DNA of 64,000 nucleotides from assembly GCA_950097015.1 (NCBI GenBank), contig CATNEN010000034.1, positions 806,001 through 870,000 on the forward strand, in the 5' to 3' direction. The first letter of the stretch is position 1, and every line of letters begins with the position of its first letter. A program made the translations under genes and the position numbers. Shown here piece after piece: positions 11,947 through 23,671 of the stretch. Source of the stretch: Macrostomum hystrix (taxonomy: Eukaryota > Animalia > Platyhelminthes). The notes below the pieces were generated by a model that was not told the DNA's origin, did not search any database, and worked only from the letters and a program-made list of their open reading frames with translations.

Positions 11947-13524
11947 CGGCCCAGCAATGAGACTGGAGAGAGCAACAACACCTGCACATCTACATTTCTG
12001 CTCGGCGAAAGTAGACTCTATATTCAATTATAACAAAGTCGACAGACCCAGTGAAGTAGAAAACTTATTTTGTGTAACATTGGTTAAGCACGCGGTAATG
12101 GAAACTCAATAATTTTTATTATCACAAAAATCGTTTGAATATTTTTAGTAAACGCCAACAATTTCTAGATTGAGTACATAATTATATATATACTGTTATA
12201 CTATTTATTTTCTATTATCAGCAAAATAATAAGAAAACTTGGAAAAGTATATGTTTTAATTATTAATAATTTTAAACAAATCTAAAAATGAACTTTACAG
12301 TATTATAACAACGATTATGATGTACAAAAAGTACAACAAACTATCGTGTTCAATCTTAGAATATTAATCTTACTCTCGTGTTTTAAAAGATGTAAACCAT
12401 AAAATATTATGCACTGTAAACTCCCCATTTGCACTTATACAGATTTATCGTGATAACAATAAGCTATTATCTTGCTGAACTAAATATTCATTCGTGCACC
12501 ATTTGTTGTGTGATTTTTATTTAAAACCAAAAAGCACGAATTGAAAATAGTCAGTTAGTGAAGTCGTGGCCTCTTCAGCATGCACTTTTAGTAGCTAGAG
12601 AAGCACCGTTGGACTTTCTGCTTATTGCCATGTCAGCACCCACTGCCCTAATAGCGAGTCGGTATTTTGATAAGTAATCTTTCAACTCTTTTCTGGTATT
12701 TTTTCCTTTCTACTGCACATTGTTATCGCAGCTGTAATACATTTTTTTCTGTGATTCTGAATTTTTATGTTGTTTATAACCAATTGCAATAAGGACTTCT
12801 GAAACTAACATCTCGACTTTGTAAGTTGCCCCTGTATTAAATCATGTTGTTTTTTATATCTAAAAGTCCCTATGCTAGTTTTTGACGTCCTTTTAGTTCT
12901 GAGCATAATTAATCGATCGATTTTCATATATTTACAGTCTAAATCGCATTATTGCACTCTATGGTCTATAGTCTGTATTTAACATGCGATAACTATCTTA
13001 TCGACTATTGTTATGATCTAGATTCTAGAATCTATAAAAGTGCACAATGAGGATTATCTTGATTTATGTCCTTGACGGTCGAGCTGACCCGAAAATTCTA
13101 GGATGTCCAAGCAGACCAAAAACCCAATTGGCGCCAATTTTACACAGTTGTCCTTCACTGTATATTTTGTTTTTTTCTTACTGTCTCCTGTTCTAAGAAA
13201 TCCGAAATTGTTGTTTTAGACAGTTTTCACAAAAAACATCACTTGAGTTTTTTTCGAGCTAAAAATAACATCCGCCTCACTAAGCGCCCACCCCAAAGTT
13301 GCTGCACATCTTGCTCTTAAGAGCTTTCTATGTATTGTTTTCTTTTTTCTTGTCCCAGATCGACTAATGAAAGCACCCCGGCTGTTAATCGTACTCTCAC
13401 AAAAAATAAACTCTAGTAGCCACGAGACCGTCATTCTATCCGATATATCTATCGATGGAATCTGATTTACTTACTAAGTTTTCGAAGACAACAAAAACAA
13501 GAAGACAACAACAACAATGATGGA

Positions 13525-14550: not shown

Positions 14551-15581
14551 ATGCCGTATCAGCTGCAGCCGTCACTGCTGCGGCTGCTGCTGCCGTTGCT
14601 GCTTTTGGCATTGACTGATAGCCAGGCCGGCGCCATTGTGACCTCGGCCCCAGGTCAGATGAGTCTTTGCAGCGGCTCCAGTCGCTACCAGTGCGTACAG
14701 TCCTGCTACGATAGCGGCCAGAGGCTGGTCACAATCAAGGACCTGGACACTAACAATCGGGTCAAGGCGTTCCTGCTGGGAAAGAGGGTCGACAAGGCCT
14801 ACGTTGGCATGGACGACCAGGCGCGAGAGGGTGAGAGATTGAGGATCGGGAACAGCGATGGATGAGGATCGGGAACAGCGGTGGATGAGGATCGGGAACA
14901 GCGGTGGATGAGGATCGGGAACAGCGGTGGATGAGGATTGGAATTAGGGGTAGATGAGGATTGGGAATTAAGGGTAGATGAGGATCGGGAATTTGGGGTA
15001 GATGAGGATTGGGAACCGGGAAGGCAGATGAGGATTGGGAAAAGGGAGGGCAGATGAGGATTGGGAACAGGGAGGGCAGATGAGGATTGGGAACAGGGAG
15101 GGCAGATGAGGATTGGGAACAGGGAGGGCAGATGAGGATTGGGAACAGGGAGGGCAGATGAGGATTGAGAACAGGGAGGGCAGATGAGGATTGGGAACAG
15201 GGAGGGCAGATGAGGATTGGGAACAGGGAGGGCAGATGAGGATTGGGAACAGGGAGGGCAGATGAGGATTGGGAACAGGGAGGGCAGATGAGGATTGGGA
15301 ACAGGGAGGGCAGATGAGGGTTGGGAACAGGGAGGGCAGATGAGGGCCAGCGGTAGAGCATGCACAGAAGCTGGTAGGCCCTAAATTCTGCTCCGCGGCA
15401 CCCGCAGGCTACTTCCAGCGCACGGACGGCAGTGTCTACGTGAAGGACGATTTCAATAGGTGGGCCAGCGCCACAGGCGGTCCCGAGCAGCTAAACGAAG
15501 GTGACGACTGCGTGACCGTCGACAGCGATGGTAACTGGCGCGTTGAGTCCTGCAGCCTGCAGCTGCCATCGGTCTGTGAAG
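14551..15581 (+). CDS. Secreted C-type lectin domain protein; join(14551..14830,15408..15581), terminal exon or stop unresolved
   Basis: Signal peptide, then C..SC...GQRLVTI...AYVGMDD, phase-1 intron, then FNRWASATGGPEQLNEGDDCVTVDSDGNWRVESCSLQLPSVCE, which is the CTLD Cys/Trp pattern. A GTGAGC donor follows at 15582; otherwise the frame reads through to a stop at 15634. Confidence 0.85.
14840..15345. repeat. 26-nt minisatellite (GATGAGGATTGGGAACAGGGAGGGCA)
   Basis: Fills the lectin intron starting about 10 nt after the donor. Confidence 0.95.
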
Positions 15582-17480
15582 GTGAGCACATGTTCGCTTT
15601 TCCTTCCCTGAGATATAATAAAATGAATATATAGAGAGAACCCAGCGATTTGCGAACGTGAGCACGCGAGGCAGCTCTGGTGAGTCAACTTCTTGCATTT
15701 TTTGCTTCTTTTAATTGTTTTCCGAACGAATCCACGCCAGCAAAGTAGAAATTTCAGGATTTTTAAGGCGCCTATCTGAACTACAAGTTTTGACAAGTAC
15801 TATAATTTCGGTCTGACTGTTGACACCAAGCGGCCTACTAAAGCCAGTAGTCTGTAACGATTAATAATGCTGCAGTACTGTTGAATTTTTCTAGCAAGAG
15901 AAAAACTGATTTCTTCTTGTAACGTAACCATTTTATTGTACTGATAAGTAGTTTATCTCGTAGTTAATGTGCATTTCTTTAGCTTTTTCCAACAAAGCTG
16001 TGAAAATGAGTATTCATTGATTAAATAAAACACGATATCAACACAAGACTATTTGTTTTGAATTCAAAATCATTTACTGAGAGGTAATTATACCATATAT
16101 CGAAAACGCAATGACACATTTTAATGGGCTCGACACAGTTCTAACCGATTTGGTAGATATTGGGAATAGACAGTCAGGGAAATCCAGGTTCAGGAAGCCG
16201 ATTAATCTGCAAGGGGAGGAAGAGCAGAAGGGGAGATGACAAGAAGGGGAGATGACAAGAAGGGGAGGAGAAGAAGCGGAGAGGAGAAGATGGGGAAATG
16301 AGAAGATGGGGAGATGCGAAGAAGGGGCAATGAGAAGAAGGGGAGAGGAGAAGGGGAGAGAAAATAGCAGTGGTTTTCCGATACGTTAGAAAAAGTGCGT
16401 AAAAAGCTTTTCTCAACACATGGCCCACCGTGCTTTAAAATTATAAAGCACGTAAAGTGCTTTAAAATTTACAGCTTCCATCCATCGACACTTGATTGTT
16501 TATTTGCCGGTTCGAGTTGTATGGGCTGCACTTGGCTGATGGAGATCTTTTGAGGGGAGGTTGGGTTATGGGGTGGCTGAAGGCTGAAGCGCGCAATAAA
16601 ACTATTCCAGTTTGGACTGGTTTTAGCAAACCTAACTCCCTCTCAACTGCCCTCCCTTCCTTTCACTCCTCACTCCCTTGACAAAATGTACATGCGCGTG
16701 CTAAACAACAGTTGGTGATGCCAATGAGGATTAAGAATATTTATTGAATTAGAAAATGTACGTCAGGACATTGTGTGAAAGCAAGTCTCTTAAGAAAATG
16801 CTAAAATAGCTGGTTATTTTACGTTGAAATATTTTGCCGGTTTGATCTGGATCGGAAAATGGAATCTCCCAATAGCCGTTTTTATCTTCCATCATCAACC
16901 AACAGTCAACACCATCCCATCCCATTCTCCCCCACTTATCGAGCTCTTGCATTATAAAGTAGCCAATGACGTTTTCTGTCTTAGAAACCCGATTTCTCCC
17001 CTTTTGGGGTGGATGCTCCGCTTGTCTCTAAAGCGCACAAATTGCTTAACCCTCACTGCTGACTCCCTCCCACTATTTCAAGGCATTTGAACTGGCATTG
17101 GGGTACATAGACTGGGCAGGAAGGCCTGGACAACCACCTCCTTCCGTTCTACGTACAAGAGAATCTACATATGTACACTGGAGGAGTGGGTTGTTCAACC
17201 TCGCTTTCGGCCTCTGCCCCTGCGCCCTTCAAAACAAGGTCCTCGCGATTTTATGTACGCTTTCTGTGTTGAGTGAGCCCCACCACCCCATTTCCGTCCT
17301 CCCAGTCTGCTGAACATTCAGCCACGGCAGTTTTTGTTCAGAAAATGCATAAAGAACGAAAATTGGATGGAGTTTATTACAGTCCGGAGCGAGTCGTGCT
17401 CGAATAGTTTTTTATCATTTGAACTTTAAATACTTAAACTTGAGTAGTTGAGAACCTGGTTATTTTCAATTTCAACTAAG

Positions 17481-20400
17481 ATGGCGATCAGCTATGCATC
17501 AAAGATCTACACCAAGGATCGCCTGTTCTTCCTTAAACTGCTGTTTCGTTGGACTGGCAGCGTCTGGGAAATGCTCTGGGTCGACTATATATTCTTTGTC
17601 CTGTCTTACGTCATCCTGGCGGTGATTTATCACCAAGTCCTGGCGAATCACGAGCACCGGATGATCACATTCGAGGCTGTGGTGCGCTGGCTTAGCAAGA
17701 TTCGCACCTCCGTGCCGTTATCTTTTATGCTCGGCTTCTTTGTGTCAACCGTGTTTAGTCGGTGAGTTGTGCTACGCTTAATTGTCTGGCTAATTGATCA
17801 GCTGACTTTAATCTAGGTTTTTTCGAGTTTAGATAAATAAATTGCAATTACGCTTTAGTTACATTGTTTTTAACTGTGTTTCGCACTCACTACACTCTGA
17901 GTTCTTAGTTCTGAGTTCTGACTTCTGTATTATAAAAAAATTTAACGTTTTTTTAATATATGGAATCTAAAAATACTTTTAGCTAGGGGTCTCAATCTTA
18001 ACAAAATTAGGCTGCCTTTTAAACTGAATGTTAATGTTACTTAACTGCCTTTCTGGCACCTCAGCTGCTTCTTTGCCACTTTTAAGGCCCCCGTTGCCTC
18101 TCTGGCACTTTCATGGCGTTTCTGGCACTTTCATGGCGCTTCTGACACTTTCATGGCGTTTCTGACACTTTCATGGCGTTTCTGGCACTTTCATGGCGCT
18201 TCTGACACTTTCATGGCGTTTCTGACACTTTCATGGCGTTTCTGACACTTTCATGGCGCTTCTGACACTTTCATGGCGCTTCTGACACTTTCATGGCGTT
18301 TCTGACACTTTCATGGCGTTTCTGACACTTTCAAGGCGTTTCTGACACTTTCATGGCGCTTCTGACACTTTCATGGCGCTTCTGACACTTTCATGGCGTT
18401 TCTGACACTTTCATGGCGCTTCTGACACTTTCATGGCGCTTCTGACACTTTCATGGCGTTTCTGACACTTTCATGGCGCTTCTGACACTTTCATGGCGTT
18501 TCTGACACTTTCATGGCGTTTCTGACACTTTCATGGCGTTTCTGACACTTTCATGGCGTTTCTGACACTTTCATGGCGTTTCTGACACTTTCATGGCGCT
18601 TCTGACACTTTCATGGCGTTTCTGACACTTTCATGGCGCTTCTGACACTTTCATGGCGTTTCTGACACTTTCATGACGTTTCTGACACTTTCATGGCGTT
18701 TCTGACACCTTATAGGGTCTCTGGCAACTACACTACTGTTGGGCACCTCCACCTGCCTTTCTGGCACCTCTATTGGCCTTTATCACACTTCCACTGCCTT
18801 TTTGGCACCTCACTGCCTTTCTGGCACCTCCACTGCCTTTCTGGCACCTCCACTGCCTTTCTGGCACCTCCACTGCCTTTCTGGCACATCCACTGCCTTT
18901 TTGGCACCTCCACTGCCTTTTTGGCACCTCCACTGCCTTTCTGGCACCTCCACTGCCTTTCTGGCACATCCACTGCCTTTCTGGCACCTCCACTGCCTTT
19001 CTGGCACATCCACTGCCTTTCTGGCACCTCCACTGCCTTTCTGGCACATCCACTGCCTTTCTGGCACCTCCACTGCCTTTCTGGCACATCCACTGCCTTT
19101 CTGGCACCTCCACTGCCTTTCTGGCACCTCCACTGCCTTTCTGGCACATCCACTGCCTTTCTGGCACCTCCACTGCCTTTCTGGCACCTCCACTGCCTTT
19201 CTGGCACCTCCACTGCCTTTCTGGCAACTCCACTGCCTTTTTGGCACCTCCACTGCCTTTTTGGCACCTCCACTGCCTTTCTGGCACCTCCACTGCCTTT
19301 CTGGCACATCCACTGCCTTTCTGGCACCTCCACTGCCTTTCTGGCACCTCCACTGCCTTTCTGGCACCTCCACTGCCTTTCTGGCAACTCCACTGCCTTT
19401 TTGGCACCTCCACTGCCTTTTTGGCACCTCCACTGCCTTTCTGGCACATCCACTGCCTTTCTGGCACCTCCACTGCCTTTCTGGCACCTCACTGCCTTTC
19501 TGGCACCTCCACTGCCTTTCTGGCACCTCCACTGCCTTTCTGGCACCTCCACTGCCTTTCTGGCACCTCCACTGCCTTTCTGGCACCTCCACTGCCTTTC
19601 TGGCACCTCCACTGCCTTTCTGGCAACTCCACTGCCTTTCTGGCAACTCCACTGCCTTTCTGGCAACTCCACTGCCTTTTTGGCACCTCACTGCCTTTTT
19701 GGCACCTCCACTGCCTTTCTGGCACCTCCACTGCCTTTCTGGCACCTCCACTGCCTTTCTGGCACCTCCACTGCCTTTCTGGCACCTCCACTGCCTTTCT
19801 GGCACCTCCACTGCCTTTCTGGCACCTCCACTGCCTTTCTGGCACCTCCACTGCCTTTCTGGCTCCTCACTGCTTTTTTGGCACCTCACTGCCTTTCTGG
19901 CACCTCCACTGCCTTTGTGGCACTTTCATGGCGTTTCTGGCACTTACACTCCCTATTGGGCACCCTCCATCTGCCTTTTTGGCCCTTCAAAGGCCTCTCA
20001 TCAGTGCCTACAAATAACATTACAACGGCCGCATCTATCTTTCCCTCGCAGCTGGTGGAGCATGTGTATGTCCATTCCGTGGCTGAGCAGCATGTCATTC
20101 TACACCCAGGCCCTGGTTGAGAGCACCCACCCTGTTAAAAGCGACATCGCTAGAAAAATTCGCATCACAATTCTACGCTACTTCAACCTGTCCTGGATAC
20201 TAATGATGGCGACAATATCGCTGCAAGTCAAGGATAGATTCGGCTTCAACAAGCCGAAAAAACCTAAGAAGGCTGTGGCAGCCGACGCCACCGCAGCCGG
20301 GGATGACGAATCAACAGACACCGGCAAGAATGAAAAGAAGGCCGCATTTGAGCTGACTTGGCGAGAGAGGCTGCAACTAATCAATTCGGATGAGAAGGTA

Positions 20401-23400
20401 CAGAAGCACTTTGGCAGGCTCGTCACTGACGAGGAGGTCGCGACATTCGCCAGATCGGCCGAGCTGTCCCAGAGCACCGATCTCACTTACAGTCCTGAGT
20501 ACTGGCTGCCACTCACCTGGGCTACTCGACTCATGAGGCGCGCCAGGACTTTAGGTAACTGGCGGTACACAATGGGAACGTAAAGAGGAGAGTGGGAATA
20601 GTGAGGGGAATAATAATAGTACGAGTAATACTAGTATTATTATTACTGTTTTACAGTCCATGGACTGGGGGGACGCCACACTCAATTACGAGAACCAAAG
20701 CTAATGCTGGTACCCATTTAATAGCTGGCTGAACTGAAGCAATCCAGAGTTAAGTATCTTGCTAAAGGACACAAATTGCTCTAGTGATGTCGGGTATCGA
20801 ACCCTTGACCTTAAAGTCATAGGTCAGGCGCAGAAAACACAAGGCTACAATAGTAGGGGATATATGAGAGGGGATTGGGAAGAGCGTGGAGTGGGGATAA
20901 GAGTGGGGAAGAGTGGGGATAAGAGAGAGGAAGAGTGGGGATAAGAGAGGGGAAGAGTGGGGATAAGAGAGGGGAAGAGTGGGGATAAGAGAGGGGAAGA
21001 GTGGGGATAAGAGAGGGGAAGAGTGGGGATAAGAGAGGGGAAGAGTGGGGATAAGAGAGGGGAAGAGTGGGGAAAAGAGAGGGGAAGAGTGGGGATAAGA
21101 GAGGGGAAGAGTGGGGAAAAGAGAGGGGAAGAGTGGGGATAAGAGAGGGGAAGAGTGGGGATAAGAGAGGGGAAGAGTGGGGATAAGAGAGGGGAAGAGT
21201 GGGGAAAAGAGAGGGGAAGAGTGGGGATAAGAGAGGGGAAGAGTGGGGATAAGAGAGCGGAAGAGTGGGGATAAGAGAGGGGAAGAGTGGGGATAAGAGA
21301 GGGGAAGAGTGGGGATAAGAGAGGGGAAGAGTGGGGATAAGAGAGGGGAAGAGTGGGGAAAAGAGAGGGGAAGAGTGGGGATAAGAGAGGGGAAGAGTGG
21401 GGATAAGAGAGGGGAAGAGTGGGGGATAAGAGAGAGGAAGAGTGGGGATAAGAGAGGGGAAGATTGGGGATAAGAGAGGGGAAGATTGGGATAAGAGAGC
21501 GGAAGAGTGGGGAAAAGAGAGGGGAAGAGTGGGGATAAGAGAGAGGAAGAGTGGGGATAAGAGAGGGGAAGAGTGGGGATAAGAGAGGGGAAGAGTGGGG
21601 ATAAGAGAGGGGAAGAGTGGGGATAAGAGAGGGGAAGAGTGGGGAAAAGAGAGGGGAAGAGTGGGGATAAGAGAGGGGAAGAGTGGGGATAAGAGAGAGG
21701 AAGAGTGGGGATAAGAGAGGGGAAGAGTGGGGATAAGAGAGGGGAAGAGTGGGGATAAGAGAGGGGAAGAGTGGGGATAAGAGAGGGGAAGAGTGGGGAT
21801 AAGAGAGGGGAAGAGTGGGGAAAAGAGAGGGGAAGAGTGGGGATAAGAGAGGGGAAGAGTGGGGAAAAGAGAGGGGAAGAGTGGGGATAAGAGAGGGGAA
21901 AAGAGAGGGGAAGAGTGGGGATAAGAGAGGGGAAGAGTGGGGAAAAGAGAGGGGAAGAGTGGGGATAAGAGAGGGGAAGAGTGGGGATAAGAGAGGGGAA
22001 GAGTGGGGAAAAGAGAGGGGAAGAGTGGGGATAAGAGAGCGGAAGAGTGGGATAAGAGAGCGGAAGAGTGGGATAAGAGAGCGGAAGAGTGGGAACCGAG
22101 ATGTTAATGCATATAGACTACTCAGTAGATGCGGCAAGTTTTCTAAGTGCTCAACCTATTCTCACACCCTTCCAGGCCTCATAGCCGAAGAGCGAGAACT
22201 GCTATTTCTGGTTGAGATGACCAACAAATTCAGAGGCGACCTCGGCACGGTGTGGTCCTACAGCGAGTTCAACGTGCCGCTGGTGTACACCCAGGTGGCT
22301 GTGGCTGCAGTATACCTGTTCCTGTTCTCAACTCTGCTATCAACTCAGATGACCCGTGCGGAGATGGTGCCCCAGATGACCATGACCCCAGCGGCGGCCG
22401 TTTCTATGACCAATCAAACCCGCCGCCCACTCAGTAATCTGATGGAGACAGTGCTTGGAGTGGAACTGCTGTCCTACTTCCCTGTGCTAGGCTCCTTGGA
22501 GTTCATTTTTTACCTGGGTGAGAACTAGGAAAATAAGGACTTGATTTTTTTAATTCCTAATGGGTATTTTCACAAAATAGGATTACAAAAATGAGGCTAA
22601 TAACCAGGGGAACTTAAATTACCGCCTAAGATTGAAATTTTTATGTGAGTTTTAGATACGCTCGCATTAAATGAAGAGTTAGGATTAGAATCTGGGATTG
22701 AGATTTGAGATTGGGGTTTTGAAATTAGTATCTAAGATCGGATCTGTGATTCGGCCATGAAATTGGGTATTTAGGATTGGGATTTCGAGTTTAGAAGATA
22801 CTATTCTGAGATTCGAATCTTAGATAGGGATTTTCAGATTGGGATTTGCGATTGGAGTTTTGAGATTGTGATCTCAAATGTGAGGTTGCGATTAGGATTT
22901 TAAATTGTAAAATAAGATTGGGATCCGCAATTGGTATCTGAAATGTAAAATTTCGTTATACAATTTCGATTCGTGATTTGGCATCCAAATCCACTCTCGG
23001 CCTTCTCAGGCTGGTTCAAGATCGGCATCATGCTGCTCAACCCCCTGGGCAAGGACCGGGCAGACCTGCCCCTCTCCGACATTCTCAACTCAAACCTGAA
23101 GTCCTCAGTGAAGCTAGGCGGTGCGGAGGACAGCCTCTTCCCGCCCGGCCTCACGGACAATGGCGAGCCAGCCGAGCAGCAGGTGGCCCTTCTCCTGCGC
23201 TCTTTTGACTTCAGCCAGGTGCACGCGCACGATAATTTCACGCCGGCGGAGGAGGTCGAAGCCCACCTGCACAAGCACCTGCTGCGCCGCCTGCAGGGCA
23301 CAGGTAAGGAGATTGTGAACACTCTCGACTTTCTGCAGTTGCGCAACGCCGGACGAAAGAAGGCGGGCGCCAAGGCAGCTGCGGCCGCCATCGCGACAAA

Positions 23401-23671
23401 GTCGGCCCCGAAGAAGTCGGCCTCCGGCAGCGACCTGCTGGACAAAAGCGGCCCGGCGGGCTCCGGTGCTACAGGCGCCGGTGCTACAGCCGCGGCTCTG
23501 GTCGCTTCGCCGTCAATCGAATCGCTGACGTCTCTGGAGGTCGAGGCGATGCGGGCCAGTGTGCTGGCAACAATGCGGCCGCGCCACGAGAGCATGCCGC
23601 TGATCGGTCTTAAGGATGGCGGCGGTGGCGACAGCGAGTTGGGCGGCCTGGGAGCAGAGGAGCGGGTTTAG
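17481..23671 (+). CDS. BEST: Bestrophin-family anion channel (divergent), 595 aa; join(17481..17761,20052..20554,22176..22517,23010..23671)
   Basis: Motifs MAISYAS, LLFRWTGSVW, VPLSFMLGFFVSTVFSRWW, RYFNL, VKDRF, YWLP, PLVYTQV and FYLGWFK...LNPLG. Phases 2/1/1 are consistent and the total is 1788 nt. Confidence 0.93.
18043..19915. repeat. Two adjacent related 20-nt arrays: (TCTGACACTTTCATGGCGTT)n at about 18100-18710 and (CTGGCACCTCCACTGCCTTT)n at about 18745-19915
   Basis: Bestrophin intron 1; both have a 20-nt period. Confidence 0.95.
20654..20850 (-). mobile_element. tRNA-derived CORE-like SINE, copy 1 (bestrophin intron 2)
   Basis: Aligns end to end with 35375..35570. Shares the CAGTCCATGGACTG palindrome, GGTACCCA and GAGTTAAGT..CTTGCTAAAGGA core. 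Has a degenerate B box and an (AAT)n-like tail at about 20625-20650. Confidence 0.75.
20890..22092. repeat. 22-nt purine-rich minisatellite (GTGGGGATAAGAGAGGGGAAGA)
   Basis: About 54 units, bestrophin intron 2. Confidence 0.95.

Follow-up and report, generated by a model that had tools for sequence, protein, structure and literature searches.

The stretch of DNA analysed here, 64 kb of Macrostomum hystrix contig CATNEN010000034.1 (positions 806,001 to 870,000; hereafter the window, with w marking a coordinate within it), carries a gene that by sequence profile and predicted fold is a member of the bestrophin family. The gene is intact and kept under strong purifying selection, and its predicted product joins a conserved channel core to a variant Ca2+ clasp and a variant pore aperture. 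Reading the DNA together with a list of its open reading frames (ORFs), we placed it at w17481-23671 on the + strand, which applies to all parts of the gene, as four exons with 1788 coding nucleotides (nt), that is, 595 codons plus a stop (Table 1). All exon boundaries are GT/AG, the codons split at the three junctions close as Arg, Gly and Gly, and the frame is open in 4/4 exons. An initial annotation of this stretch had read NPLGKDRADLP at the clasp, YSEFN in place of the canonical YDWIS, and a neck of V76/F80/F84. Translation of w23012-23671 returns the first string exactly, that of w22178-22516 returns the second along with the Arg at w22193-22195, and the neck residues lie in the VPLSFMLGFF of exon 1.

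Table 1. Features of the M. hystrix bestrophin gene in window coordinates (TM, transmembrane helix; residue numbers follow BEST1)
Feature	Coordinates (w)	Strand	Content and basis
Exon 1	17481..17761	+	ATG at 17481; N-terminal extension, TM1-TM2 including the neck; last 2 nt belong to the split Arg codon, followed by GTGAGT; PF01062 positions 1-109, E 2e-18; 95% amino acid identity with the M. lignano orthologue exon
K-D-R triplet	17514-17522	+	Exon 1; residues 12-14, N-terminal extension
Neck codons	17712..17738	+	Val 17712-14, Phe 17724-26, Phe 17736-38, corresponding to BEST1 I76/F80/F84
Two 20-bp minisatellite arrays	within 18101..19983		Non-coding; most of intron 1
Exon 2	20052..20554	+	RFG for RFP, then a low-complexity insertion, EYWLP helix at the end; Pfam positions 92-152, E 9e-8
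RFG site	20211-20219	+	Exon 2; context K-D-R-F-G-F
22-bp minisatellite array	20889..22093		Most of intron 2
Exon 3	22176..22517	+	Aperture helix, YSEFN, PLVYTQV/TM3, variable extracellular loop, TM4; PF01062 48.4 bits, E 9e-13
Arg codon CGA	22193..22195	+	Aperture position 205 of BEST1; the residue before it, Glu204, is invariant
YSEFN	22259..22273	+	Replaces canonical YDWIS, residues 227-231
Exon 4	23010..23671	+	End of TM4, Ca2+ clasp, conserved subfamily-specific segment of ~85 residues, low-complexity tail; TAG 23669-71
Ca2+ clasp NPLGKDRADLP	23039..23071	+	N296 P297 L298 G299 K300 D301 R302 A303 D304 L305 P306

Pfam, genome and structure searches were run exon by exon, and full-length analyses used natural relatives of the window gene from Macrostomum lignano, the paralogue P0002 and the orthologue P0022. 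The cut-off of PF01062 (RFP-TM), 24.2 bits, is exceeded by exon 3 and, in a six-frame search of the genome, by exons 1 and 2 (73.1 and 37.9 bits). The clasp exon by itself reaches 14 bits (E 0.027), under the cut-off. P0002 matches solved structures down to E 5e-41. An AlphaFold2 (AF2) model of P0022, built on a 26-row alignment, has predicted local distance difference test (pLDDT) scores of 70-94 in its core and low confidence at the N-terminus, two lineage-specific loops, the D-R-A residues of the clasp and the C-terminal tail. In a Foldseek search with this model, the top 22 matches are all BEST1 or BEST2 (E ~1e-14, target-normalised template modelling score 0.70-0.85), and KpBest comes next. 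The PF01062 matches and the modelled fold of the orthologue both agree with the bestrophin identity given in the initial annotation.

As read from its sequence, the protein departs from three hallmarks of the studied Ca2+-activated channels BEST1-4: the contiguous acidic cluster, the aperture and the RFP motif. Where these channels carry E300-D304 (EDDDD) and E306, the window gene has K300, R302, A303 and P306. The aperture of BEST1, BEST3 and BEST4 is formed by V/I205, and that of BEST2 by a K208-E212 pair with Ser or Gly at 205 (PMC8496536); the window gene has R205, L208 and E212. Here we depart from the initial annotation, which had cited a lysine in BEST2 as a parallel at position 205, since that lysine is K208, paired with E212 (PMC8496536). 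The third motif, called invariant in bestrophins (PMC2292144), is R-F-G throughout the subfamily described below, the window gene included. It is also altered in other flatworm bestrophin groups (RFS, RFL, RFT) and missing from some crustacean matches, so RFP does not truly define the family. Two further features of the BEST1-4 channels are retained. The hydrophobic neck at 76/80/84 is V/F/F and invariant across the subfamily, and the coordinating aspartates D301 and D304, together with N296 of the clasp loop, are invariant in the six paralogues and the orthologue. The ligands of Ca2+ are the D301 and D304 side chains together with the carbonyl groups of A10, Q293 and N296, and E300, D302 and D303 are non-coordinating (PMC8496536); the side-chain ligands named initially agree with this.

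These assignments depend on the alignment to vertebrate bestrophins, in which residues are numbered one higher than their index in the chicken BEST1 chain. The sixth residue of exon 3, the arginine, aligns to human BEST2 residue 205 in a phmmer search against solved chains. P0002 aligns to chicken BEST1 ungapped over two blocks, one extending from EYWLP past PLVYTQV and the other running from GWFK across the clasp, which sets the arginine on V205 and G-K-D-K-A-D-L-P on G299-E300-D301-D302-D303-D304-F305-E306. A MAFFT alignment of 26 sequences yields identical columns for Arg205 and the clasp. The initial annotation had placed the arginine at 205 and listed D301 and D304 as kept with E300>K, D302>R, D303>A and E306>P, and the HMMER, P0002 and MAFFT alignments all lead to the same positions. 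The residues might instead be misplaced, such that the arginine is not at 205 and the basic residues are not at 300 and 302. This would fit the weakness of the clasp exon when it is taken alone, both against Pfam and against solved structures, where it aligns to BEST2 287-318 at E 1.6. We consider such an artefact very improbable given the agreement of the 26-sequence alignment and the ungapped full-length alignment between the anchors EYWLP-PLVYTQV and GWFK-NP.G. The pattern is also beyond chance because five paralogues and the M. lignano orthologue all carry these residues, with the arginine written by four codons (CGA, CGC and CGG in the six M. hystrix genes, CGT in the orthologue).

To place the gene among its relatives, the genome (220 Mb, 42 contigs) was searched in six frames with the Pfam bestrophin family, giving 79 exon matches that correspond to ~20 genes. 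Five paralogues on contig C38 have the exon boundaries of the window gene and 50-78% identity to it exon by exon, and a genome search with the clasp exon returns exactly these six genes plus two distant relatives. The six share VPLSFMLGFF, [ED]-E-R at 203-205, Y[ST]EFN and the clasp consensus GKD-[RKQ]-[AE]-D-[LIV]-P-[LM]-S-[DE]-ILNSNLK. K300 is invariant in all subfamily members, whereas residue 302 varies between R, K, Q and E, and residue 212 is Glu in only some of the paralogues. Residues 300-304 carry a net charge of 0 to -2 in the subfamily and of -5 in canonical bestrophins. Across the subfamily, residues 12-14 read K-[DE]-[RK], a position where canonical bestrophins are uncharged; this triplet may have co-evolved with K300 and R302 of the clasp.

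The subfamily genes are arranged as two tandem pairs and singletons. One pair lies at C38:29616119-29621162 and 29623724-29627084 (L001, L002), the other at C38:1433519-1438206 and 1442873-1446418 (L003, L004). L001 and L002 encode near-identical protein pieces, which suggests a recent duplication, and in L003 and L004 the clasp exon is split by an additional intron, located after about residue 58.

Bestrophins of this genome outside the subfamily carry other types of clasp, and none of them has K300. Genes on C7, C15 and C34 (at 107 kb) carry the canonical GEDDDDFE, and those on C1, C24, C25 and C38 (at 12.97 Mb) carry GDDDEDF. Two more distant paralogues, C37:2873032-2873523 and C7:7711429-7711968, have the intermediate clasps GVDEEDFP and AADVDDLP. 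Both share with the subfamily a segment of the type (L/F)P(F/L)S..ILNSNL(K/R) after the clasp, reading ..PFS.I(L/F)NSNLR in the two of them, and the C37 paralogue also has Arg at 205. These features suggest that flatworm bestrophins lost the acidic cluster step by step.

The orthologue of the window gene is M. lignano BOX15_Mlig017879g1 (PAA60023.1, UniRef A0A267EEP4, our P0022; 600 residues), annotated automatically as ‘hypothetical protein / Bestrophin homolog’. Its gene (L026) likewise has four exons and an upstream C-type lectin neighbour, its exons are 79-95% identical in amino acid sequence, and it has the identical IAEERELLF and NPLGKDRADLP. It differs in belonging to another species (synonymous divergence, dS, ~1.1), in its shorter introns devoid of minisatellites and in a longer low-complexity insert in exon 2, an insertion confined to this orthologue lineage. 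The P0022 protein bears out every splice junction of our gene model and shows exon 4 to be free of further introns. At the DNA level, the exons alone align between the window gene and L026, at 75-86% identity.

We compared the two genes by the Nei-Gojobori method (NG86), exon by exon and with counts alone summed. Summed nonsynonymous divergence (dN) is 0.10 against a dS of 1.1, a ratio of 0.09 (0.035-0.13 per exon, and 0.066 for the first 96 codons of the clasp exon); since dS is near saturation, the ratio is approximate, with dN still far below dS. For the gene model, further agreement comes from L027, the orthologue of a paralogue: this 1845-nt intron-free contig (run SRR28338165) is open over 559 codons, and its blocks match the exons of paralogue L004 at 77-88%, with breaks at homologous junctions. 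It looks like a spliced mRNA of a subfamily member from a third species. The initial annotation had raised an unexpressed, neutrally decaying copy with dN/dS near 1. The family is expanded, some of its members elsewhere in the genome are fragments with stop codons, and the introns of the window gene are enlarged by minisatellites, all of which would suit a pseudogene. We find this explanation extremely improbable for a gene with open frames and canonical splice sites in all four exons and an intact, syntenic orthologue, whose exons have stayed similar between species while the introns diverged beyond alignment; a dN/dS of ~0.09 excludes neutral decay.

The intron arrays are strand-asymmetric and comprise 30 copies of 20 bp (18101-18708) and 62 copies of 20 bp (18742-19983) in intron 1 and 55 copies of 22 bp (20889-22093) in intron 2; the corresponding M. 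lignano introns are short (446 and 985 bp), and none aligns between the species. The C-type lectin gene upstream (w ~14551-15634, +) encodes a signal peptide, is syntenic with a Lectin_C gene at L026:2333-3536 and contains a tandem array of 20 copies of 26 bp (w14840-15345). Further upstream, at w10457-11946 (+), are long ORFs for a coiled-coil-like protein whose C-terminal region is acidic. On the other side of the bestrophin gene, two downstream blocks, w25276-25453 and w25667-25720, are 85-87% identical to L026:11734-11911 and 12680-12733, and are presumably exons of a conserved neighbour gene.

Beyond the genome, a profile of the clasp exon (A1) was searched against 1.84 billion representative proteins and gave 15 matches at E<=1e-3. 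Two are strong: P0002 and P0001, the latter from an intron-free Logan contig. The weak matches include short bestrophin fragments with the clasps GDDKHDLP, GKEQSDLP, GSDPSDLP and REDQSHFP, two of them from the monogenean Protopolystoma xenopodis. Four other matches (P0003, P0007, P0013, P0014) were rejected as relatives, being giant repeat proteins that build up their scores from many matches of ~7 bits each, as were two frameshifted Macrostomum fragments (P0008, P0015). A conserved GGAED segment after the clasp was considered as a second, RTX-like Ca2+ motif and rejected on the basis of these alignments.

Word-index searches were made with full-length P0002 and an alignment (A2), because exon-sized queries miss full-length kin. 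They yield ~10 M. lignano subfamily proteins, whose annotations go no further than ‘hypothetical protein’ or ‘Bestrophin homolog’. Next comes a sister group at 35-40% identity (P0026, P0040, P0041), followed at ~30% identity by bestrophins of arthropods and nematodes. In the sister group the motif is YNEFN and the clasps are GREQSDLP and GEEHGDLP, with E-R or N-R at 204-205 in 2/3 and Gly at 205 in 1/3; residue 301 is acidic even here. Its entries (with P0009 and P0011) are UniParc or Logan records. In a maximum-likelihood tree, the Macrostomum subfamily has support of 100/99 and subfamily plus sister group 100/98, although the tree is long-branched and sparsely sampled and contains neither vertebrate nor other spiralian sequences. 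The six genes are thus supported by sequence as a distinct, conserved and lineage-restricted subfamily. The initial suggestion of a distinct invertebrate subclass holds as regards distinctness and conservation, to which the six genes, the M. lignano orthologues, the supported clade and the low dN/dS all speak. The word ‘invertebrate’ was too broad, as strong matches are found in Macrostomum only, and weaker relatives in other flatworms and among UniParc and Logan entries. We found nothing relevant in the literature on bestrophins of Macrostomum, flatworms or planarians, and no mention of P0022. The orthologue sequence is public, as an automatic annotation only.

Compared with vertebrate BEST1 (chicken 4RDQ and 6N26, human 8D1I), a Ca2+-activated Cl- channel, the window gene has the same predicted fold, the neck at 76/80/84, N296-P297-x-G299, D301, D304 and the PLVYTQV and GW(F/L)K motifs. 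It differs in its low overall identity (~23-30%), in E300K, D302R, D303A, F305L and E306P, in Arg for Val/Ile205, in YSEFN for YDWIS and RFG for RFP, and in an unrelated region after residue 318. No C-terminal inactivation peptide is recognisable. Vertebrate BEST2 (bovine 6VX5, human 8D1E), the best-scoring solved relative of exon 3, likewise has a non-hydrophobic, charged aperture, where the basic side chain of its K208-E212 pair is directed at the pore axis and serves as an anion-binding site. That basic residue is one helical turn away from 205, and the window gene has Leu at 208; the full EDDDD is present in BEST2. KpBest from Klebsiella, a more distant fold match, and VCCN1 of plant thylakoids are Ca2+-independent homologues, evidence that an acidic clasp is dispensable for gating in the bestrophin fold. 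In these two the clasp is absent, and KpBest conducts cations, whereas the window protein keeps the clasp backbone and both aspartates.

Our preferred reading, held with fair confidence, is that the gene is functional and encodes an anion-channel subunit of the bestrophin family with a variant clasp and aperture, which would still use the D301/D304 site for Ca2+ with altered affinity or coupling and would have a charged aperture. The protein would assemble as a pentameric anion channel with its gate at the hydrophobic neck, and Ca2+ would be bound through D301, D304 and backbone carbonyls. The site is probably still used because both aspartates are strictly conserved and residue 301 is acidic even in the sister group. 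The initial annotation had proposed strongly shifted or lost Ca2+ gating and altered selectivity; the invariance of the two ligands across the clade argues for a site in use over a lost one. Apparent affinity for Ca2+, coupling to the N- and C-terminal extensions, or both, would differ from BEST1, since the negative charge thought to concentrate Ca2+ and to recruit these extensions is gone. With a ring of five Arg205, flanked by the invariant Glu204, a hydrophobic aperture would give way to a charged, hydrophilic one. Such a ring could act as an anion-attracting site, functionally nearer to K208 of BEST2 than to the dehydration filter or gate of BEST1.

Several observations weigh against this picture. 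It is inferred from sequence, and the subfamily is known here from its genes and a predicted monomer. In the AF2 monomer of P0022, the D-R-A stretch of the clasp and residues 1-22 have pLDDT <50, so the side-chain geometry of K300, R302, D301 and D304 is not readable from it. Moreover, human BEST1 (hBest1) carrying E300Q, D302N, D303L or E306Q is in each case essentially non-functional (PMC2585866). On the strength of these mutants, a clasp of this kind would be expected to fail in a BEST1 context, and Ca2+ gating may have been lost or rebuilt. In mouse Best2 (mBest2), E306A is wild-type-like, and D301A and D304A abolish current (PMC2650406). Because single substitutions kill function in hBest1, the natural K/R/A/P combination must be compensated or must work differently, and the K-[DE]-[RK] triplet at residues 12-14 is a candidate for the compensation.

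The same mutants lend themselves to a Ca2+-independent bestrophin, a serious alternative, though one that we regard as unlikely. Here Lys300, and Arg or Lys302 where present, would act as a tethered cation that neutralises D301 and D304, with the clasp held permanently in a ‘bound-like’ or otherwise Ca2+-insensitive state and gating left to some other signal, for instance cell volume, pH, voltage, a ligand or C-terminal tail phosphorylation. It fits the invariance of K300, the loss of Ca2+-activated current on single neutralisation of E300, D302, D303 or E306 in hBest1, the charged triplet gained by an N-terminal extension that is part of the Ca2+ sensor, and the existence of Ca2+-insensitive homologues such as KpBest. 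It fits less well with residue 302, which is inconsistently basic, with the retention of N296, P297 and G299, and with the strict conservation of D301 and D304, including an acidic residue 301 in relatives of 40% identity, as expected if a metal is bound. In a bolder and still more doubtful version, the Ca2+ sensor would have become a Ca2+-independent salt-bridge switch, driven by another signal, with Lys300 and the N-terminal triplet filling or neutralising D301/D304, and the Arg205 ring would be a new charged selectivity site. If true, this would be a natural experiment on how the clasp is coupled to the neck gate.

The number of genes also invites the idea, raised in the initial annotation for a modulatory subunit, of a non-conducting or modulatory subunit, active only in heteropentamers with other bestrophin paralogues. 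Partners would be at hand in a genome of ~20 bestrophin genes, six of them in the subfamily, and a five-arginine ring might be disfavoured in a homomer. This seems quite improbable to us, as the neck and pore-lining helices are fully conserved and the arginine is present in all six paralogues, leaving no obvious partner without it within the subfamily.

Large and divergent invertebrate bestrophin families are already known, with 26 genes in C. elegans (PMC2292144). Work on bestrophin gating has dealt almost wholly with vertebrate BEST1 and BEST2, in which EDDDD is treated as near-invariant and intolerant of mutation. The practical weight of our finding is modest because its functional claims are all inferred. 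Flatworm genomes contain ~20 bestrophins spread over several clasp classes that no study has addressed. Among these, the subfamily offers a natural separation-of-function set, in which the two coordinating aspartates are kept and the other positions are basic or neutral, under strong purifying selection in several genes and species. Such a set could reveal whether the non-coordinating acidic residues recruit Ca2+ or dock the two termini, and whether permeation is altered by cationic side chains ringing the pore at 205.

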